Source: Ramazzottius varieornatus (taxonomy: Eukaryota > Animalia > Tardigrada). Taken from it: a stretch of DNA of 64,000 nucleotides. The translations under genes and the position numbers were made by a program. Below the pieces are notes generated by a model. That model saw nothing but the letters and a program-made list of their open reading frames with translations, did not search any database and was not told where the DNA came from. Positions 14,901-58,815 of the stretch are shown here, piece by piece. How positions within the stretch are numbered: the stretch's first letter is position 1; the number at the start of each line of letters is the position of its first letter. Location: NCBI GenBank assembly GCA_001949185.1, contig BDGG01000010.1:687233-751232 (forward strand), given 5' to 3'.

Positions 14901-17900
14901 CTGATGAATGAAGCATAATTCTAATCGTCTGGATGTGTATCGTTCAAATGGCTCTGATTGGTATTCACATGAGAAATTTGAGGCAACTCCACATCTGCAA
15001 ATCTAATTTGTGCTAATATCCGCATTATTAAGCAGTGAGTACGTGACGTCATCCAACTCGCACACGGGGTGACTGTGCCAAAGCCGAACAGCGTTGGCCG
15101 CAGTGACGTCTTGCGTTTGTTCGGTGTGTAAATGCGCAAGTTGCGCTGACAAGGAAAGACGCGGTGGAATATTCCGGCTTTCGGTGTTCTTCTTTGACTT
15201 TCCTGAAGACTCAGGTATGTGGTCGACTAGTTGAAGGGTTGAGCTGTGAGAAGTAAAGGCGAGACAGACAGTTAGGTAAAATTGTGATGGACACAAAGAC
15301 GAACGGCATGTTTGGACAATGTGCACCGAAACGATCGAGTGTCTCTTCTGGCTCTGTTCAGCGCTCTGTTATGGCCTTGTTATCAATTTATCATCACCGC
15401 TTCCTTCCGTCCTGTAACTCTTGTTCTCTGTTCCCTCTTTCAGTGTACGATGTAGCAACATTCTTCCCTTCCGTGGTGTTTGATCTATGGCTTCCACTCT
15501 TGACGTGCTGGTCAGCCATGTAAATTTTGGCGGTGGTCAAATCTGTTCTCCTCCCGTCTCTTCTTGTTCTGGCTGGAAGTAATACGAGAGCAGATGCGAA
15601 GAGGGCGAAGGCGGGGAAGGGTTGGCTAGGCAGGAAAGAACCGTAAAACTTTGAATCTATGACTATTGTTTAGAGAGGGGGAACAACCGACACGAAGGCG
15701 TCCACTTCAGCCTTTTGTCAAATTGTCGATGGCGAATTTTGGTGTGAAGGTTCAGGCAATTCTTTCCTTGGCCATCAAGCCTGCAGCTGGGAAATTAGAT
15801 TCATGAGTGTGGAAATTTTATGGAATAACGTGGCAGAACAGTGTCCAGTCTCATGTAATGCGTTGTTTGCCGAATTCGGCTTGATCAGATTTAAATTACA
15901 TCCACATGCACACTTTTGCTGGCGATTTCTTGTGGAGATTCGTGGGTGTTGTGCTTTCGGCTTTTTGTTAGTGTTTGTTCTTGGTAGGTGCGGAATGTGG
16001 AATTGTGACGGAGGGGTTTGATCACCGTTTGATGTTTATTTTGTGTTACAGTGCATCAACTGCCTTCCAACATGCCCTGTATTTGGATCCCGCCTTCACG
16101 CGGGCGCAGGAGGTGCTCTTCAAGCTGGGATTAATTTTCAAGCACCTGCAGATCTATGATGTAGCTTACAAATACTATCGACGCACCATGAACGACCCCA
16201 CAACCTTCACCGAGACCAAGGAAATGAGTGAGTAATCTCTTCCCTGATAAACGTATTTCTAAAAACTTGGCAAACAAACTTGACAGTATTCGACAATATT
16301 CGTTTTCCAGATGGTGCACACTTCCACTCAGTAGCAATGGAAGCGTGCGCTACTGAAAATAAACTGGACAGGCTTGTTCTTCCAAGTGGCGAGCCCTTAC
16401 AGCCGTTAGCACTGAGAACATGCGCTACTGTAGAAAAGAATCCTATTAAGTTTGCTGTGCGTTTTTTTCCCGCTGTACTGTCGGAAAAACTCATTTCATG
16501 GTTATCCATGATTTCTCAAATGAAATTACAGTGTTATCGTTGACTTTTATCTCTGGTTGAATGTCCTCGTAAATCTTCTCAATGACACACCTTTCTTCTT
16601 GTTGCAGTCAATTTTCATATCGGCCATGTTTACGAACTCCAAGGTCGATATGAGATGGCCAAGGCGTATTACGAGAAGGTTATCCAGTCGCCGACCTGCG
16701 ATAACCAGCTGCGAGCCGAAGTTCTTCGCCAGCTAGGATGGATGTTCCACACAGTGGAGGAGTTTGGACATCGCAACCAACGCGACGAGTCGGCCATCAA
16801 GTGCCTGTCCAAGTCCATCGAGTACGACCCCAACAATGGCCAGACGTGGTACTTCATGGGTCGCTGTTACGCCGCAATGTCCCGCGTTCACGACGCCTTC
16901 TCCGCTTATCGCTCCTCCATTGATAAGTCGGAGGCCAATGCTGATACCTGGTGCTCCATCGGGTACGTAAACACCTCCATAACAGAGCTGCTGAACCCGC
17001 TTCAAAATTCAGTATATGGGAGCTCGGTAAACAAAATCGATCAGATCGGTTTCCTATAAGTGGCAGTGGCGCACATTGTTGGTGGTTTTGGCTGGCATAG
17101 TGCGCCACTTGCGTGAAACAATCCGTTCGACTTTGAATGCCGAGTTTCCATATCGTTTTTCACGCAACTACATCGCACAGTGACATGGGAGTATTAATAG
17201 GGTGGTATTTGGCTTGAGTTCTGACCGGATAACAGCATTCGAAAGTTTTATCTGGATTTTGTTTGAAGTGAAGGTGTGGAGTTGTTGACTGTTGATTTTT
17301 CTTTTAGGACGCTCTATCAGCAACAGAACCAGCCGATGGACGCGCTTCAAGCTTATGTCTGTGCCGTCCAGCTGGACAAGTCCCACAGTCCGGCGTGGTT
17401 CGACCTGGGTATGCTGTACGAAAGTCTCCAGCAGTTCTCTGATGCTTTGCACTGTTACCAGAACGGTATCAAGTACGGCAAGACGGAGGCGACGCCGGCC
17501 ATCTCGCACAGAATCGAAATTCTGGAAAACGCTCTGAAGACCTCGCCAGCTATTTTCGACGCATTGTAAGTACGCGTACTCAATTAACCCGCTGAGAAAC
17601 AGCTTCACAAATGGAAAATTTGATTTCAATTCAATGCCGCTTTGTCGTAGACCGAAGCAGCTGCCATCTCTTGAGGAAGCCCTGGCTCTTCCGATTGCGG
17701 CCGAATTGACTGCGGGACACCGCCCACCACAGACGGTCAAGAAAACCACACTCCTACCGGAAACGTCGGTTCTTCCTGTTCTCAACGCGCAGCAAATCAC
17801 TCTGCTGAATATTCTTACGCAGACCGAGGTCCGTTAGACAATCAGTTTTCCCTTCCGAAATGTAAAAGTTGCTTTGTGCACTATTTTGAGTCACACAGAG

Positions 17901-20900
17901 CCACAAGAACTCTTTTCGAATGTCGCCATTGGCATCGAAAGACTGACCGTTCATAGTAACAAACAGATGTTAAATGCGAGTTGTTCTTTCGTCCTTCAAC
18001 CGATCTTCGACCGAGCTTTTCCATTTCAGCATGAACTTGCTCCTCCTCAGAAGCAGCTTCTCGAGCAGCTCCGTCAACAAGCGCAACAAGTTCAACAAGT
18101 TCAGCAAGCTACCCTCACTAGCCCGAAGACACCCTACGGAGCTTCGATGGCTGCAGTACAGAGCCTCCGAGACCAGCCCTTCCCACTCATGAGCTTCTCG
18201 CCGACCGTCGACATTGGTCTGTCGAAGCACCTGGAAAAGATTGACGAACTCGTCAAGAGGACCGCCGCGGACATCCTGGCGGAATGCGCGTCACTGGACT
18301 ACGGCAAACTGAGCGGCCAACACCTCAGGTAAATTTTCATAACTGTACGGAACATGGTAGAAATTCACGCTCCAAGAGGGACGATTTACAGCTTTCGACC
18401 AGTTCAATGTAAATGAAAGTAGCGATGAAATTCAAGTTGATGTTGATGCGAGTGGGTTTCCCGGTAGGTTGAACTTGTTGAGTGACAACGTGTCGCCTCC
18501 TGTACCTCCAAAGCCACCTCAGCCGCCGCTGCCCAAGAGTGCCTTGGACCCGAAGACGCCTTGTGTCTACGTGGAGAACAAGAAGGAAGCCATGTCGCTC
18601 GACCTGGAGAACAATCTGCTGCGGCAACCGTGTATGATTGTCAAGAACCTGAGCAACGTTCTGAAGCTCGATCTCAGCCTCTTCTCGACCAAGACGCTGG
18701 TCGAAACCGCACCTGACCACACCATCGAAATCCGCACCCAGAAGAAACAAAGTCCCGACGTAAGTCCAGATGTGACATATTTATAGAGAAGAAGGATTCT
18801 TTCGTCATGCAAATGCTCCGTTGTGACAGGATAATTTTGATGCTTTGGGTGCGGAGCGCATATGGAAGTGTGAAAGCGTCCGGACTTTCTCCACGGTCTC
18901 CAAGTATGGCATCTGTCAAGCGACAGACTTCCAGAAAGCCTTGCAGGAAGAGAACGAAGGGAAAGCACCACCATCGGACACGGACTCAACAAATTCCGGC
19001 TCCAAGAAGGACAAAGGTGAAAAAACGCACACTGGCGAAGAAAATTAGATGGACTCTGAATTGAGAGTTCGCCAGTCAGACTCGACCAGACCGCTCGCCC
19101 AAGTGGCGCACGCTTCCAGTCAATATCATGGAAGATGTGCGCCACTAGGGAAAACAATTCGGTCGAGTTTGTTTGCCGAGCTCTCGACTATTCGCAAAGA
19201 AGTGATGATTTTATCGAATGGAAGCAGTAGGATTTGGACATACAGGAAGATGCAGAAACAAAGGTTTTCATTGGTCGTTTGTTTTTGTCGTTGCAGGCAA
19301 AAAGAGCGGAAACATGATCAGGTTCGGTACGAACGTGGACCTGTCCGATCCCAGCATCTGGAGAGCCCAGTTGGCCGAGCTGGACAAGCTGCCTTCTTTG
19401 GTTAAGGTAAAGGCGGCTAAGAACATGCTGAGCCATCTGGAGCACACCATCCTGGGCATGAACAGTGTCCAGCTGTACATGAAGATCCCGGGGTGTCGGA
19501 CGCCTGGACACCAGGAGAACCTCAACTTCTGCTCGGTCAACATCAACATCGGTCCGGGCGACTGCGAATGGTTCTGTGTCTCCCATGAGTACTGGGGTGT
19601 CATCAACCAACTATGCGAAAAGTAAGTGCAGTAGCGAACAATTTGCGGAAAACATTTTTGTCAGGAAAATAGAACGAAACTGAGGGAGGAACGAAAGCAG
19701 GAAATGCGGGGACGTTTCCTCTCGGCTGTTGGGTGCGCGTCATGTCGTTGGTATACTTCGGGGCTTGTAGCGTTTGTCTTAGTGGAGCCTTCACACCGTG
19801 ACCGCGTCAACTAATTACGATGACTTGCAAACTATACAATAACAAGATCATGTGAGGTGTCGCGGTCAGAAACTGAGAATAAGGATCTCGCGGCGCTTCC
19901 TTGGATGCGCTTGCGTAGTTGTCTGCTTTGATTGGGTCTGCCACTGATTTCGAGGGTTACTTGATTCTTTTAGGGGGAAAAGTCTTGCGTTTCGTAAATT
20001 AGCTTTCGAATTACCTATCCAGGTAAACTGTCTGAGTAGTTCCTCGGCAGGCTTCATAAAGTGTGTCGGGAAAACTGCTTGGTCATTATAATTGCTCCCG
20101 GAAGCATATGACTGGTTATTAGAAAGGAAGTCATTCATCGCCGTTGGTGCCTGGAAGCCTGTTGCCGTTGGCTTGGCTGCCTGTCGAGTTTCAAATCATC
20201 GCTGGCACTTTATACCAGGCATTCGTACGCATCGACTGTGTACGTAGACTGTGTTTCATCTGCTTGTAAAGCCCGATTCGATCTGCTCGATGTTAAGGCT
20301 CTTTGTTCGGTGTCAGGCTTTCAGTCGTTCCGTCTTTGTTACTCCTGCAGCTGCAGCCACCTTCCTGCAACCTTCAGCTTCTCGCCTTGCCCTTTTATCC
20401 TTCGAGCTTCGCTCCTTCAGCTACACGATGAATACGATGAACAATACGGTCCATCACATCAAGCAAGGTATCGCCAACATGCTGGGCTCGGACGACAGTG
20501 GCAAGAAGCCCACCATCTTGGTGCTGGGCAGCACCGGCCAGGTTGGAGGACAGGTGATTCACGAGCTGGAAAAGCATTCCAGCGTCAGTGTCCGCTACAC
20601 TTCTCGCAAGCAAGACCAGGTAGCTGCATGGAAGGCCGAAGGAAAGGACGCCGTCTACATGGACATGGACCAGCCTTCCTCCTTTGGACAAGCCTTTAAC
20701 GGCGTCAATCGACTCTTCCTCGTGACGGGCTACAGCGTGGCCATGTTGACGCAGGGTAAGACGCTGATCGACGCAGCCATCAAAGCAGGAGTCCAGCATG
20801 TCGTCAAGATCACCGTCTACTACCAGTGGGACAACATCGATCCTCATCTGTCGTGGCATCAGCTGTTGGATACCTATCTGCAAGCTTCAGGTATACCCAA

Positions 20901-22791
20901 GGATAAATTTCTGTACTGCTTTAGTACCAGTTTAGGTACTCTTGTGGACACTTGTACTTAGTAGTTACAGTAGTTTTTGTTTTGACTAGGGATGGCTTGG
21001 ACTTTGGTGCATCCCAACTGCTTCATGGAGAACGTCAGCAGTCTTCGGGGTGGTAATTATGATTACTACTGGGGTAATCAACGGGTAGGCTGGGTGGCTG
21101 TGAAGGACATTGCCGCAGTGTCGGCGACGTGCTTGAAGGAAGGTCCACGACGCCATGGTGGCAAGGAGTACTGGCTGAGCAGCGAAGTCCTCGATGGTCC
21201 GCAGATGGCTCAGATCCTGTCGGAGGAACTGGGACAACGCATCAATGTGTCCATCAAGACCGACGAGGACTTCAAGAAGGCATTAGACGCTTACAAGTTC
21301 ATGGAACAGTGGTATGGAGACGGCTTGAGGGTCTTCTTCCGTGAAGTGAGGAACGGCGGGATGGGCTACATTGGGACGGTACGAGATGATGTGCCCTTCG
21401 TGACGGGACAGCGAGCCACCACCTTCCGCGAATACGTCCAGGCCAACAAGGCGAAACTGCTGGGTAGCATCAATGGATAAAGAACCGGTTATTGATTTGC
21501 TTTGTTTTCATACATGGTCGACCTCCGGTGGCAGTGTAATTAATCTCATCTTGGTCAATTTCCCCTGCGAGCTGTAACTCGAACGTACTTCATGGATTTC
21601 AAAAGCTTACGACACGTAATGAGGATGAGTAGAGCCCTTTCTGCCAATTCTTGCACACTTTCTTCCTTCCAGACTAATGCGAAGATCATCTTTCTACCGT
21701 ATTTGAATTGCAGATATAAATAATACATAAAAATTAACCACGATCTGCCTCACGAGCTGCAAGTGGGATAGACAATATCGTGAATGATCTGGTATGCCAG
21801 GAAAAAGGAAGGAGGCTTCGTTCAAAAGACTCATCATTTTGTACGACAGTACAGTCGTCGCCGTACCCATCAAGAAAATGTGGAATTCTGTGTCGGCGCC
21901 GTTTTTCTGCCGTTGGTTTCATACTTATCCCATACTAATGGCTTTGTGTTTTTCCAGGAACGATGTGCATTTCCTTCACGGTTCGTGGTGGCCCAACCTG
22001 ACGGACCTACGGAACGCCAACGTGCCTGTCTACCGCTTCACCCAACGTCCCGGCGATCTGGTGTGGGTCAACGCGGGAACCGTCCATTGGGTACAAGCCA
22101 TCGGCTGGTGCAACAACATTGCCTGGAACGTCGGACCATTCACTCCTGAACAGTATTACCTGGGTGCTGAGCGCTACGAGTGGAACAAACTCCAAAGCTA
22201 CAAGTCCATCGTCCCTATGGTCCACCTGACATGGTCCATCGCTGTCAATGTCATCTTTCAGAAGAAGGACGAGAAGCTGTGGAAGCTGATCCGGCTGACA
22301 CTTCGTCGGTCCATGAAGTACTGTCACGTGTTGTTGGAGCACCTCAAAGCTCAGGGAAAGACAATAAAGTACCAGGCAAGGGAGAAAAACGAGAATGCGC
22401 ACTATTGTGAAGACTGTGAGGTAAGGCAATAGAAATTCGATTGGGAGCGCGGTAATCAAACCAACTTAGACGAAAATGCTTTCCCGTTTGGCGCACCTTT
22501 TCGGTGTGATTGGCCGAAGCCGTGCGCCGCTTGGAAGAACGATCTGTCAAGTTTGCTTGTCTTAAATCGAAATGCTTTGTGTGCACTTGAATTTGTGTTT
22601 CGTCTCAGGCGGAAGTCTTCAACGTTCTCTTCATCAAGCAGAAGGAAGACAATTCTTCGGAGTACATCGTACGTTGTTACGACTGTGCAAGGAAGATTGA
22701 CAAGGACCTGAAGAATATCCTGGTGTTGCATCAGTACAAGCCGAAGGAACTAATGGACATGTACGATCGTTGTCAGTTGGCGGACTCTTAA
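11948..22791 (+). CDS. Utx: H3K27 demethylase Utx/KDM6 (TPR repeats, JmjC, C-terminal zinc-binding domain), multi-exon
   Basis: TPR exons ([54 protein letters not shown]). Jmj[29 protein letters not shown] and [39 protein letters not shown]. Zn domain [17 protein letters not shown]. Large introns at approx. 12683-16051 and 19622-21957. Confidence 0.96.
19078..19177. repeat. Representative copy of a dispersed approx. 100-bp palindromic element (core AGTGGCGCAC-N~26-GTGCGCCACT), at least 13 copies in the window
   Basis: Cores at approx. 1908, 2736, 3647, 10287, 16311, 16384, 17064, 19102, 22488, 29360, 39750, 40239, 49435, 55248. Outer arms resemble CTCGACAAGATCGTTTTCC / GGAAAACGATCTTGTCGAG. 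Confidence 0.85.
20290..21480 (+). CDS. NmrA-like / atypical SDR NAD(P)-binding protein nested in a Utx intron; 2 exons (intron 20891-20989); start at 20290 or 20428
   Basis: Rossmann motif [52 protein letters not shown]|[42 protein letters not shown] 99-bp GT-AG phase-1 intron joins ORFs 20251..20961 and 20992..21480. Confidence 0.9.
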
Positions 22792-57171: not shown

Positions 57172-58815
57172 ATGGCTTCGTTCAATTCCCTCTCCATTGT
57201 ACTTTGCGTTAGCTTCTTTCTCCAGGCTGTGTCTTCCAAACTCTACTCGGAGCCCTACCGTCCGCAGTTCCACTTCTCCCCAAAAGCAAACTGGATGAAC
57301 GATCCGAACGGATTGGTCTTCCACAATGGCACCTACCACATGTTCTTCCAGCATAACCCCACCGGCATAGGCTTCGGACCTATGCACTGGGGACACGCGA
57401 CAAGTCAAGACCTCGTCCACTGGGAGGAGCAGCCTCTTGCGCTCTTCCCAGACCCGCTCGGTCATATCTTCTCCGGCAGCGCTGTCGTCGACATCAACAA
57501 CACCTCGGGCCTCGCTCCTGCCGGCCTGACGGCTATTATAGCCATATATACCAGTCATAATCCCGAATTTGCAGCACAAAATCGTACGGACGTCGAACGT
57601 CAGAGTATTGCGTTCAGTGTCGACAATGGAAAAACCTTTGTAAAGTACGAAAAAAATCCCGTGCTGCCCAACCCCGGAATTCGAGACTTTCGCGATCCGA
57701 AAGTCTTCTGGTACGCTCTGCAAGAGAAATGGGTGATGGCTCTTGCGGCCCAGGACCGTATCCACTTTTACTCGTCGAAGAACTTGTTACAGTGGGAGAA
57801 AGAAAGTGAGTTTGGAGGACCTTCAATTGGAGCCCACGGTGGTGTATGGGAATGCCCCGATCTATTTCTGATCGAGCAGAAGGATATTTCGAAGTGGGTG
57901 TTGTTGGTCAGTATCAACCCCGGAGGACCCAACGGAGGTTCGGCTACACAGTACTTTACGGGTGCTTTTGATGGAAAGACGTTTACGGCCGACAGCAAAG
58001 ATATTAACTGGGTTGACTACGGTACCGACAACTATGCTGGTGTGACATGGTCAAATGTGGGAGATAGGCATTTGTTCTTGGGGTGGATGAGCAACTGGAA
58101 TTACGGGCAGTCGGTTCCGACTGAGCCTTGGCGAGGAGCTATGACGGTGCCTCGAGATCTGAGCTTGAAAGTGGCGAATGAAAATGCCTATTTAGTGTCT
58201 CAGCCCATTCCCGAGCTGAACTCGTTGATTGAAGCAGAACTGGTTTCGCTGAACGAGACGACAGTCAAGGGCGAACTGAAGCTTGTGGACACCAAGAGGG
58301 AGAACTCGACTGGCTTGCTGATGGTGAACTTTGAGCTCGCGGAGGTTGCCGAATGGTCGTTTGTGCTGGAGAACGATCTGGGCGAGCAGGTTGTTGTGGG
58401 CTATGAAGCGTCGAGCAGGCAATTGTACGTCGATCGGTCTTCTTCGGGAAAACTGGACTTTGAAATCCAATTTGCTGATAAAATGAAAGCGCCGCGAATT
58501 TCTCAAGATGGCAGTATGGATGTCACGTTGCTGATCGACGTTGCGTCGATTGAAATGTTTGCCGACGGCGGACTTACCTGCATGACTGCCATATTTTTTC
58601 CTCATAAACCTCTGAATTTGTTGAGTGTACGAAGTGGCGGTGTGGGAAGTTTGGTTTTGGGGAGTGTTCGCGTATGGAGCTTAAATTCTACAGTCTGGTC
58701 CGGTCAAGTTGATCCCGTGAGCTCAGGCCTCCGGCGCGCCCCCAGCACAACAAATAGTTTCTTCATTGTATTTTCATTGGGACTCCTATTCCTTTGCGTA
58801 TTAGGAGAGCTGTGA
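57172..58815 (+). CDS. Intronless GH32 beta-fructofuranosidase/levanase-like enzyme with signal peptide and putative GPI signal
   Basis: Catalytic motifs WMNDPNG, WGHATS.DLVHW, FSGSAVVD, FRDPKV, WECPDL; C-terminal beta-sandwich (SIEMFADGG); hydrophobic N- and C-termini. Confidence 0.95.
   Translation: MASFNSLSIVLCVSFFLQAVSSKLYSEPYRPQFHFSPKANWMNDPNGLVFHNGTYHMFFQHNPTGIGFGPMHWGHATSQDLVHWEEQPLALFPDPLGHIFSGSAVVDINNTSGLAPAGLTAIIAIYTSHNPEFAAQNRTDVERQSIAFSVDNGKTFVKYEKNPVLPNPGIRDFRDPKVFWYALQEKWVMALAAQDRIHFYSSKNLLQWEKESEFGGPSIGAHGGVWECPDLFLIEQKDISKWVLLVSINPGGPNGGSATQYFTGAFDGKTFTADSKDINWVDYGTDNYAGVTWSNVGDRHLFLGWMSNWNYGQSVPTEPWRGAMTVPRDLSLKVANENAYLVSQPIPELNSLIEAELVSLNETTVKGELKLVDTKRENSTGLLMVNFELAEVAEWSFVLENDLGEQVVVGYEASSRQLYVDRSSSGKLDFEIQFADKMKAPRISQDGSMDVTLLIDVASIEMFADGGLTCMTAIFFPHKPLNLLSVRSGGVGSLVLGSVRVWSLNSTVWSGQVDPVSSGLRRAPSTTNSFFIVFSLGLLFLCVLGEL

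Follow-up and report, generated by a model that had tools for sequence, protein, structure and literature searches.

An intact NmrA-like gene of probable bacterial ancestry lies in sense orientation within the intron that splits the JmjC domain of Utx in the tardigrade Ramazzottius varieornatus

Bacterial genomes encode proteins of about 300 amino acids (aa) that are labelled "NmrA family NAD(P)-binding proteins" (COG0702/YbjT-like), and these are the closest bacterial relatives of the subject of this work, an NmrA-like gene nested in an intron of Utx in the tardigrade Ramazzottius varieornatus. We know of no characterised member of this bacterial family. The atypical short-chain dehydrogenase/reductase (SDR) fold predicted for the tardigrade product is also that of human NMRAL1/HSCARG (PDB 2exx, 2wm3) and of fungal NmrA (1k6x), which share the NADP(H)-type Rossmann motif. 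The best structural and PDB sequence matches are KstA11 (5f5l), SimC7 (5l3z), the Citrobacter triphenylmethane reductase (2vrb) and Escherichia coli QOR2/YtfG (2zcv), four enzymes that depend on NAD(P)H, lack the classical SDR triad and use quinones, dyes or polyketides as substrates. The gene is located in a 64,000-nucleotide (nt) stretch of R. varieornatus contig BDGG01000010.1 (assembly GCA_001949185.1, positions 687,233 to 751,232 of the forward strand), hereafter the window, whose numbering is used throughout unless another contig is named. In this species, about 1.6% of the genes are candidates for horizontal acquisition (Yoshida et al. 2017, PMC5531438). Human nested genes lie on the strand opposite to their host in about 63% of the cases, leaving about 37% on the same strand (PMC3192792), and nested genes can cause exonization and cryptic polyadenylation in host transcripts (PMC3192792). 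The initial annotation of the locus had called same-strand nesting uncommon; judged by the human figures it is indeed a minority arrangement, but not a rare one.

The coding sequence of the nested gene (20428-21480) consists of two exons and is wholly contained in the Utx intron 19622-21957, on the same (+) strand. Intronic nested genes of animals likewise lie wholly within one host intron; what sets the present gene apart from the usual ones is its same-strand orientation, its putative bacterial origin and its presumed location between the catalytic ligands of Utx. Exon 1 (20428-20890) opens with the ATG at 20428 and encodes the Rossmann fold, and exon 2 (20990-21480) encodes the C-terminal, substrate-side domain and closes with the TAA at 21478-21480. 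The exons are separated by an intron of 99 bp (20891-20989, GT..AG) with 35% GC and an in-frame TAG at 20959. This intron splits a glycine codon (G|GG), and the predicted product has about 317 aa. The exons were searched one by one, and a database protein of 300 aa encoded on a 1178-bp Logan contig, P0001, was used as a full-length proxy for alignment, tree and fold. P0001 is 91% identical to the window gene in exon 1 and 85% identical in exon 2. It is contiguous over the predicted splice junction (..YLQASG|MAWT..), which supported the splice model of the nested gene. Since its coding sequence of about 900 nt is uninterrupted on a contig of 1.2 kb, P0001 looks like the spliced transcript of a close relative. 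The intact sense-strand gene with its own 99-bp intron that the initial annotation had described was thus borne out.

The intron that holds the gene interrupts the JmjC-coding sequence of Utx. The preceding exon (19297-19621; acceptor ..gttgcAG at 19295-6) encodes the N-terminal half of the domain (Pfam JmjC, PF02373, positions 1-50) and ends in phase 2, its final residues ...QLCE and the nucleotides AA being followed by the donor GTAAGT at 19622. The intron (GT at 19622-3, AG at 21956-7; phase 2) is closed at 21957 by the acceptor ...ttttccAG, and the next exon (21958-22420) opens with G|AAC GAT GTG CAT TTC, which restores the sequence K-NDVHF. The reading frame joins across the intron exactly as in KDM6 proteins. 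The break at ...QLCE-K|NDVHF... had been noted in the initial annotation together with an intron of about 2.3 kb; these coordinates hold, and the intron measures 2336 bp. The HxE iron ligands are presumably encoded in exon 19297-19621 and the third His in exon 21958-22420.

That the gene is NmrA-like was confirmed by the match of exon 1 to Pfam NmrA (PF05368), which reached 61.3 bits for a gathering cut-off of 27 (1.5e-16); exon 1 also matched NAD_binding_10 (PF13460, 3.7e-13). Exon 2 alone scored 18.8 bits against Pfam NmrA, under the same cut-off, and matched TIGR03649 at 1e-8. The motifs cited in the initial annotation are all present in the gene. The GxxGxxG dinucleotide-binding motif reads GSTGQVG (residues 34-40, 20527-20547); after it comes an invariant R..SR, which is characteristic of NADP(H)-binding proteins. 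The Tyr-x3-Lys (YxxxK) of classical SDRs was found in neither exon, and the helix corresponding to it carries a family-invariant H..W(H). The AlphaFold model of P0001, with a mean predicted local distance difference test (pLDDT) score of 90, has the two-domain fold of NmrA/HSCARG-type atypical SDRs. Its top structural matches, at a template modelling (TM) score of about 0.77 and 21-27% identity, were KstA11, Staphylococcus aureus SAV0421, the SimC7 ketoreductase, HSCARG, triphenylmethane reductase and QOR2, and the TM scores against HSCARG, QOR2, triphenylmethane reductase, SimC7 and NmrA ranged from 0.72 to 0.78. Judged from sequence and predicted fold, the nested product is an NmrA-like atypical SDR that probably binds NADP(H).

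As for the activity, KstA11, SimC7, triphenylmethane reductase and QOR2 differ from the tardigrade protein in that, at 21-27% identity, the substrate pocket is too little conserved to transfer function. The gene neighbourhoods of the bacterial relatives include an Old Yellow Enzyme at three loci, a nitroreductase, a flavodoxin-like quinone reductase, a Zn-dependent dehydrogenase (Zn-ADH), LysR regulators at two loci and MFS transporters at two loci. Because of these neighbourhoods we tentatively favour a reductase that uses NAD(P)H and acts on quinones, electrophiles or xenobiotic-type compounds, an assignment on which we would put somewhat less than even confidence.

The sequence relationships of the nested gene point to bacteria. 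After P0001, exon 1 matched an R. varieornatus paralogue (57% identity) and a protein of the tardigrade Paramacrobiotus metropolitanus (61%), and it matched metagenomic, cyanobacterial, Dyadobacter and similar proteins with 150-169 bits and 50-58% identity. The best matches of exon 2 outside tardigrade-like sequences were metagenomic proteins with 48-52% identity. P0001 is 49-54% identical to bacterial and metagenomic proteins and 50% identical to the Paramacrobiotus homologue. A tblastn search with P0001 against one genome per prokaryotic species yielded 37 loci in 37 genomes from over 10 bacterial phyla, with 39-53% identity over the full length; the phyla include Planctomycetota, Bacteroidota, Cyanobacteriota, Verrucomicrobiota, Acidobacteriota, Pseudomonadota, Myxococcota, Chlamydiota and Abditibacteriota. 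Proteins such as those of the Isosphaeraceae metagenome-assembled genome JBAUOX010000837.1, Mucilaginibacter lappiensis, Tolypothrix sp. VBCCA 56010 and Dyadobacter subterraneus can be aligned with P0001 from end to end. All 42 invariant residues are common to both sides, including GxTGxxG, TGY, WD.TDPH..WH, HPN.FME and RDD. The tardigrade gene differs from this bacterial family in its spliceosomal intron, its host-like codon composition, an N-terminal extension of 17-26 aa and a very long branch. Human NMRAL1, by contrast with the bacterial proteins, scored only 29 bits against exon 1 and did not match exon 2; NMRAL1 and NmrA share 16-24% identity with the tardigrade protein at TM scores of 0.77 and 0.72, respectively, and the animal gene and the window gene are not orthologous. 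Hence, the description of the gene as bacterial-type rather than of animal NMRAL1 type proved right. Eukaryotes among the named matches of the word-based search, which sees only relatives sharing 5-mers, were the two tardigrades and one fungus, Stemphylium lycopersici, so that the closest homologues were not broadly distributed metazoan genes.

Two further copies were found in the R. varieornatus genome (55,842,812 bp, 200 contigs), and the nested copy is the only intact one of the three. It retains all 41 readable family-invariant residues, the 42nd being the split glycine codon. The copy on contig 3 (4710359-4711573), hereafter C3, is annotated as RvY_08130 with 140 aa and is 57-59% identical to the window gene. 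Its intron lies at a position identical to that of the 99-bp intron in the nested gene. Its reading frame is interrupted by a TAA at the place of the family WHQ and shifted in exon 2, and six invariant residues are missing, which makes C3 look like a pseudogene. The copy on contig 2 (1432947-1434035, minus strand), hereafter C2, is 40-50% identical to the window gene. It lacks a start codon and five invariant residues, carries an in-frame TGA at the site of an Arg codon and has its intron at another position. As recognised by eye, C3 lies downstream of a glucose-6-phosphate isomerase-like gene and C2 adjoins an MFS-type transporter-like gene. A 165-aa protein on a 1328-bp ENA contig (P0181) consists of an exon-2-only open reading frame (ORF) that starts exactly at the splice junction; it is C3-like, shares 69-71% identity with the window gene and probably stems from a further tardigrade whose C3-type copy has kept an intact exon 2.

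The shared intron position also bears on how the nested copy reached its place. An origin by retroposition was ruled out, because the nested and C3 copies have their intron at the same position, and the nested copy would instead have arisen through duplication or relocation at the DNA level. A mobile element and a recent segmental duplication were likewise rejected: a repeat search detected no direct or inverted repeats flanking the nested gene, and a search of the genome returned no other copies of the non-coding flanks of intron 19622-21957.

We have used trees to place the tardigrade genes among these relatives. In the full-length maximum-likelihood tree of 76 proteins, P0001 pairs with the P. 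metropolitanus homologue (XP_055344267.1, "NAD(P)H azoreductase-like") with a support of 93/93, and the pair lies within the bacterial radiation. The exon-1 tree joins the window gene with P0001 (100/95), then with C3 (100/98) and then with the Paramacrobiotus protein (92/89), the placement of C2 not being settled; a single clade of all five tardigrade sequences, C2 included, was not rejected (approximately unbiased test, p-AU 0.44). XP_055344267.1 is thus a homologue within the same tardigrade clade, which differs by its full-length identity of only 50%. Together, the database search and the phylogeny proposed as checks in the initial annotation found the closest relatives outside tardigrades in bacteria and placed the tardigrade clade inside the bacterial radiation. 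These results support a bacterial ancestry of the nested gene. In the same set, the S. lycopersici "NmrA family protein" (P0129/P0010, on contigs of about 7 kb) grouped with Abditibacteriaceae and Pyrinomonadaceae, and represents either a separate transfer into the fungus or contamination of the assembly. One protein on a single 13,507-bp contig (P0012) is assigned to "Methylacidiphilales bacterium" by the protein source but to "Calothrix sp. CSU_2_0" by the genome record, so that the taxon labels of this metagenome-assembled genome disagree.

The gene has the properties listed by Yoshida et al. (2017, PMC5531438) for horizontally acquired genes: its affinities are non-metazoan, it shares its scaffold with a metazoan gene, it contains an intron, and a second tardigrade has a homologue. 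In the literature library searched, no publication combined tardigrade, horizontal gene transfer and NmrA. The content of G and C at third codon positions (GC3) is 0.69-0.72 in the nested gene and 0.67-0.75 in the Utx exons. This host-like GC3, the spliceosomal intron and the conservation of all testable invariant residues argue for domestication and, with the 91%-identical relative and the Paramacrobiotus homologue, they supported the proposal of the initial annotation that the gene was acquired horizontally and domesticated. The most economical reading would be one old transfer from a bacterium to a tardigrade before Ramazzottius and Paramacrobiotus split, after which the gene would have been ameliorated, gained an intron and been duplicated. 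The transfer is old, given the Paramacrobiotus homologue, the GC3 equal to that of the Utx exons and the gained intron. It is neither recent nor specific to the Utx locus: it took place before the two genera diverged, and the genome contains three copies of the family. In the scenario that we propose, a bacterial gene would have been taken up by an ancestor of the parachelan eutardigrades, would then have acquired the codon composition of the host and a spliceosomal intron, and would have been duplicated. In R. varieornatus, the sole intact copy would have ended up in sense orientation in the 2.3-kb intron that splits the JmjC domain of Utx. There it would most likely be transcribed as its own unit from within the Utx intron, and its product would most likely be a soluble NAD(P)H-dependent reductase of the substrate types named above.

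We consider this reading as a whole, an intact tardigrade gene of bacterial ancestry that forms its own transcription unit, encodes a soluble reductase and is sense-nested in Utx, to be likely, and several points weigh against it. In the full-length tree, the two tardigrade sequences sit on long branches (0.85) that join one another, their sister group among bacteria is not settled, and long-branch attraction may lie behind their pairing. Among proteins of 89-525 aa returned by three protein-collection searches, none was 100% identical to exon 1 or exon 2 as a stand-alone model would be, and the gene seems to be either unannotated or fused into a longer gene model. That P0001 is a transcript is something we infer from its contig. 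A script scan found neither AATAAA nor ATTAAA anywhere in the 2336-bp intron 19622-21957, and no recognisable promoter was found in it. NmrA-like proteins, moreover, can be non-catalytic redox sensors. Regarding the origin, the gene might be an ancient eukaryotic one that descended vertically and was lost in nearly all other animals. The fungal member (S. lycopersici, P0129) and the unsettled position of the tardigrade clade in the tree are compatible with such a history, which we nevertheless regard as highly improbable: the named eukaryotic matches are limited to two tardigrades and that fungus, whose sequence falls in a different, bacterial sub-clade, the relatives are spread over more than 10 bacterial phyla, and animal NMRAL1 is far more distant. 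An assembly artefact or a bacterial contaminant placed in Utx, for which nothing specific speaks, is still less credible, to the point that we consider contamination excluded. The Utx exons run in continuous frame on either side within 2.3 kb, the gene has a spliceosomal intron and a GC3 matching that of the host, its paralogues lie on two other large contigs beside animal genes (glucose-6-phosphate isomerase and an MFS transporter), and there are also the 91%-identical P0001 and the Paramacrobiotus homologue.

The main functional rival is a non-catalytic sensor of NAD(P)H/NAD(P)+ redox state, like fungal NmrA or human HSCARG/NMRAL1. Membership of the NmrA-like family, the lack of the classical Tyr-x3-Lys in both exons and the presence of HSCARG and NmrA among the structural matches all agree with it. 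Against these stand the best structural and closest PDB sequence matches, which are enzymes (KstA11, SimC7, triphenylmethane reductase and QOR2), the detoxifying oxidoreductases that adjoin the bacterial relatives, and the larger distance of fungal NmrA (TM 0.72, 16-18% identity), so we judge a sensor unlikely. A different question, raised by the initial annotation and compatible with the reading of a domesticated bacterial reductase gene, is whether the expression of the two genes is coupled. A script scan revealed an acceptor-like site (polypyrimidine tract and cAG, 20414-20420, + strand) 7 nt upstream of the ATG at 20428 and in frame with the phase-2 Utx donor. This site could be the acceptor of an intron in the 5' untranslated region of the nested gene, or be used in a chimeric transcript of Utx and NmrA. 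If the acceptor, or a 3'-end processing site of the nested gene, captured Utx transcription, the outcome would be a truncated Utx without the third iron ligand or an in-frame chimera of Utx (TPR and half of JmjC) with NmrA. The common strand, the position of the intron between the iron ligands and the in-frame acceptor-like site would fit such a capture. An in-frame state, however, has a chance of one in three by itself, the intron is devoid of the two polyadenylation hexamers, and P0001 starts at an internal Met without Utx-derived residues; we regard coupling as improbable. More doubtful still is the further step in which a chimera or a catalytically dead, truncated Utx would let a bacterial redox module tune H3K27 demethylase dosage in an anhydrobiotic animal. 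The sole near-signal after the stop codon of the nested gene was a TATAAA at 21715. A scan for bacterial promoters and terminators gave no result and is not relevant to a eukaryotic gene.

The remaining features of the locus can be described briefly. The nested ORF has an optional in-frame 5' extension (20290-20427, + strand) of 46 codons from an upstream ATG, the frame being open from 20251 (59 codons before 20428). The 46 residues include 5 Arg, 1 Glu and many Ser, Ala, Leu and Phe; we mention only as a side remark that they resemble a mitochondrial presequence, a likeness that is unproven. The extension is not conserved in C3, where a stop lies 10 codons 5' of the ATG, and the start of P0001 lies further downstream. 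The host gene, on the + strand, matched TPR, JmjC, the KDM6 C-terminal helical domain and the GATA-like zinc domain, and was assigned to the Utx/KDM6A type because of the TPR repeats upstream. These repeats are encoded at 15975-17566 (+), where Pfam TPR_1/TPR_2 matches were obtained on the ORF pieces 15975-16232, 16655-16999 and 17276-17566; in this region the coordinates are those of ORF pieces. Exon 21958-22420 (+) encodes the C-terminal half of JmjC (Pfam positions 61-114), the KDM6 C-terminal helical domain (PF21322, KDM6_C-hel, 3.5e-22) and the start of the GATA-like domain (PF21326, KDM6_GATAL), with its donor at 22421. The last exon (22609-22791, +; acceptor AG at 22607-8) encodes the rest of the GATA-like domain and ends with the TAA at 22789-91. 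The intron between these two exons (22421-22608) has 188 bp, and the intron with the nested gene is about ten times as long. At 57172-58815 (+), 36 kb downstream of the nested gene, the window contains an intronless ORF of 547 aa with strong matches to the GH32 N- and C-terminal domains (Pfam, 1e-96 and 1e-21), which is likely another horizontally acquired gene on the same contig.

The nested gene is a real but fairly ordinary case of a horizontally acquired nested gene, given that candidates for horizontal transfer make up about 1.6% of the genes of this species and that animals commonly have nested genes. Should Utx turn out to have chimeric or truncated isoforms, the locus would be one of the rare instances in which an acquired gene has reshaped a regulator of its host; otherwise the result is one at the level of annotation. 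Gene finders seldom call genes within introns, and for this reason the public gene set probably has a gap at this locus. The finding adds an old, still intact and well-supported oxidoreductase gene of bacterial derivation to the small set of credible tardigrade acquisitions, and it indicates that an acquired gene can persist in an intron that splits the catalytic domain of an essential chromatin enzyme, whereas those of its paralogues that are not nested decay.

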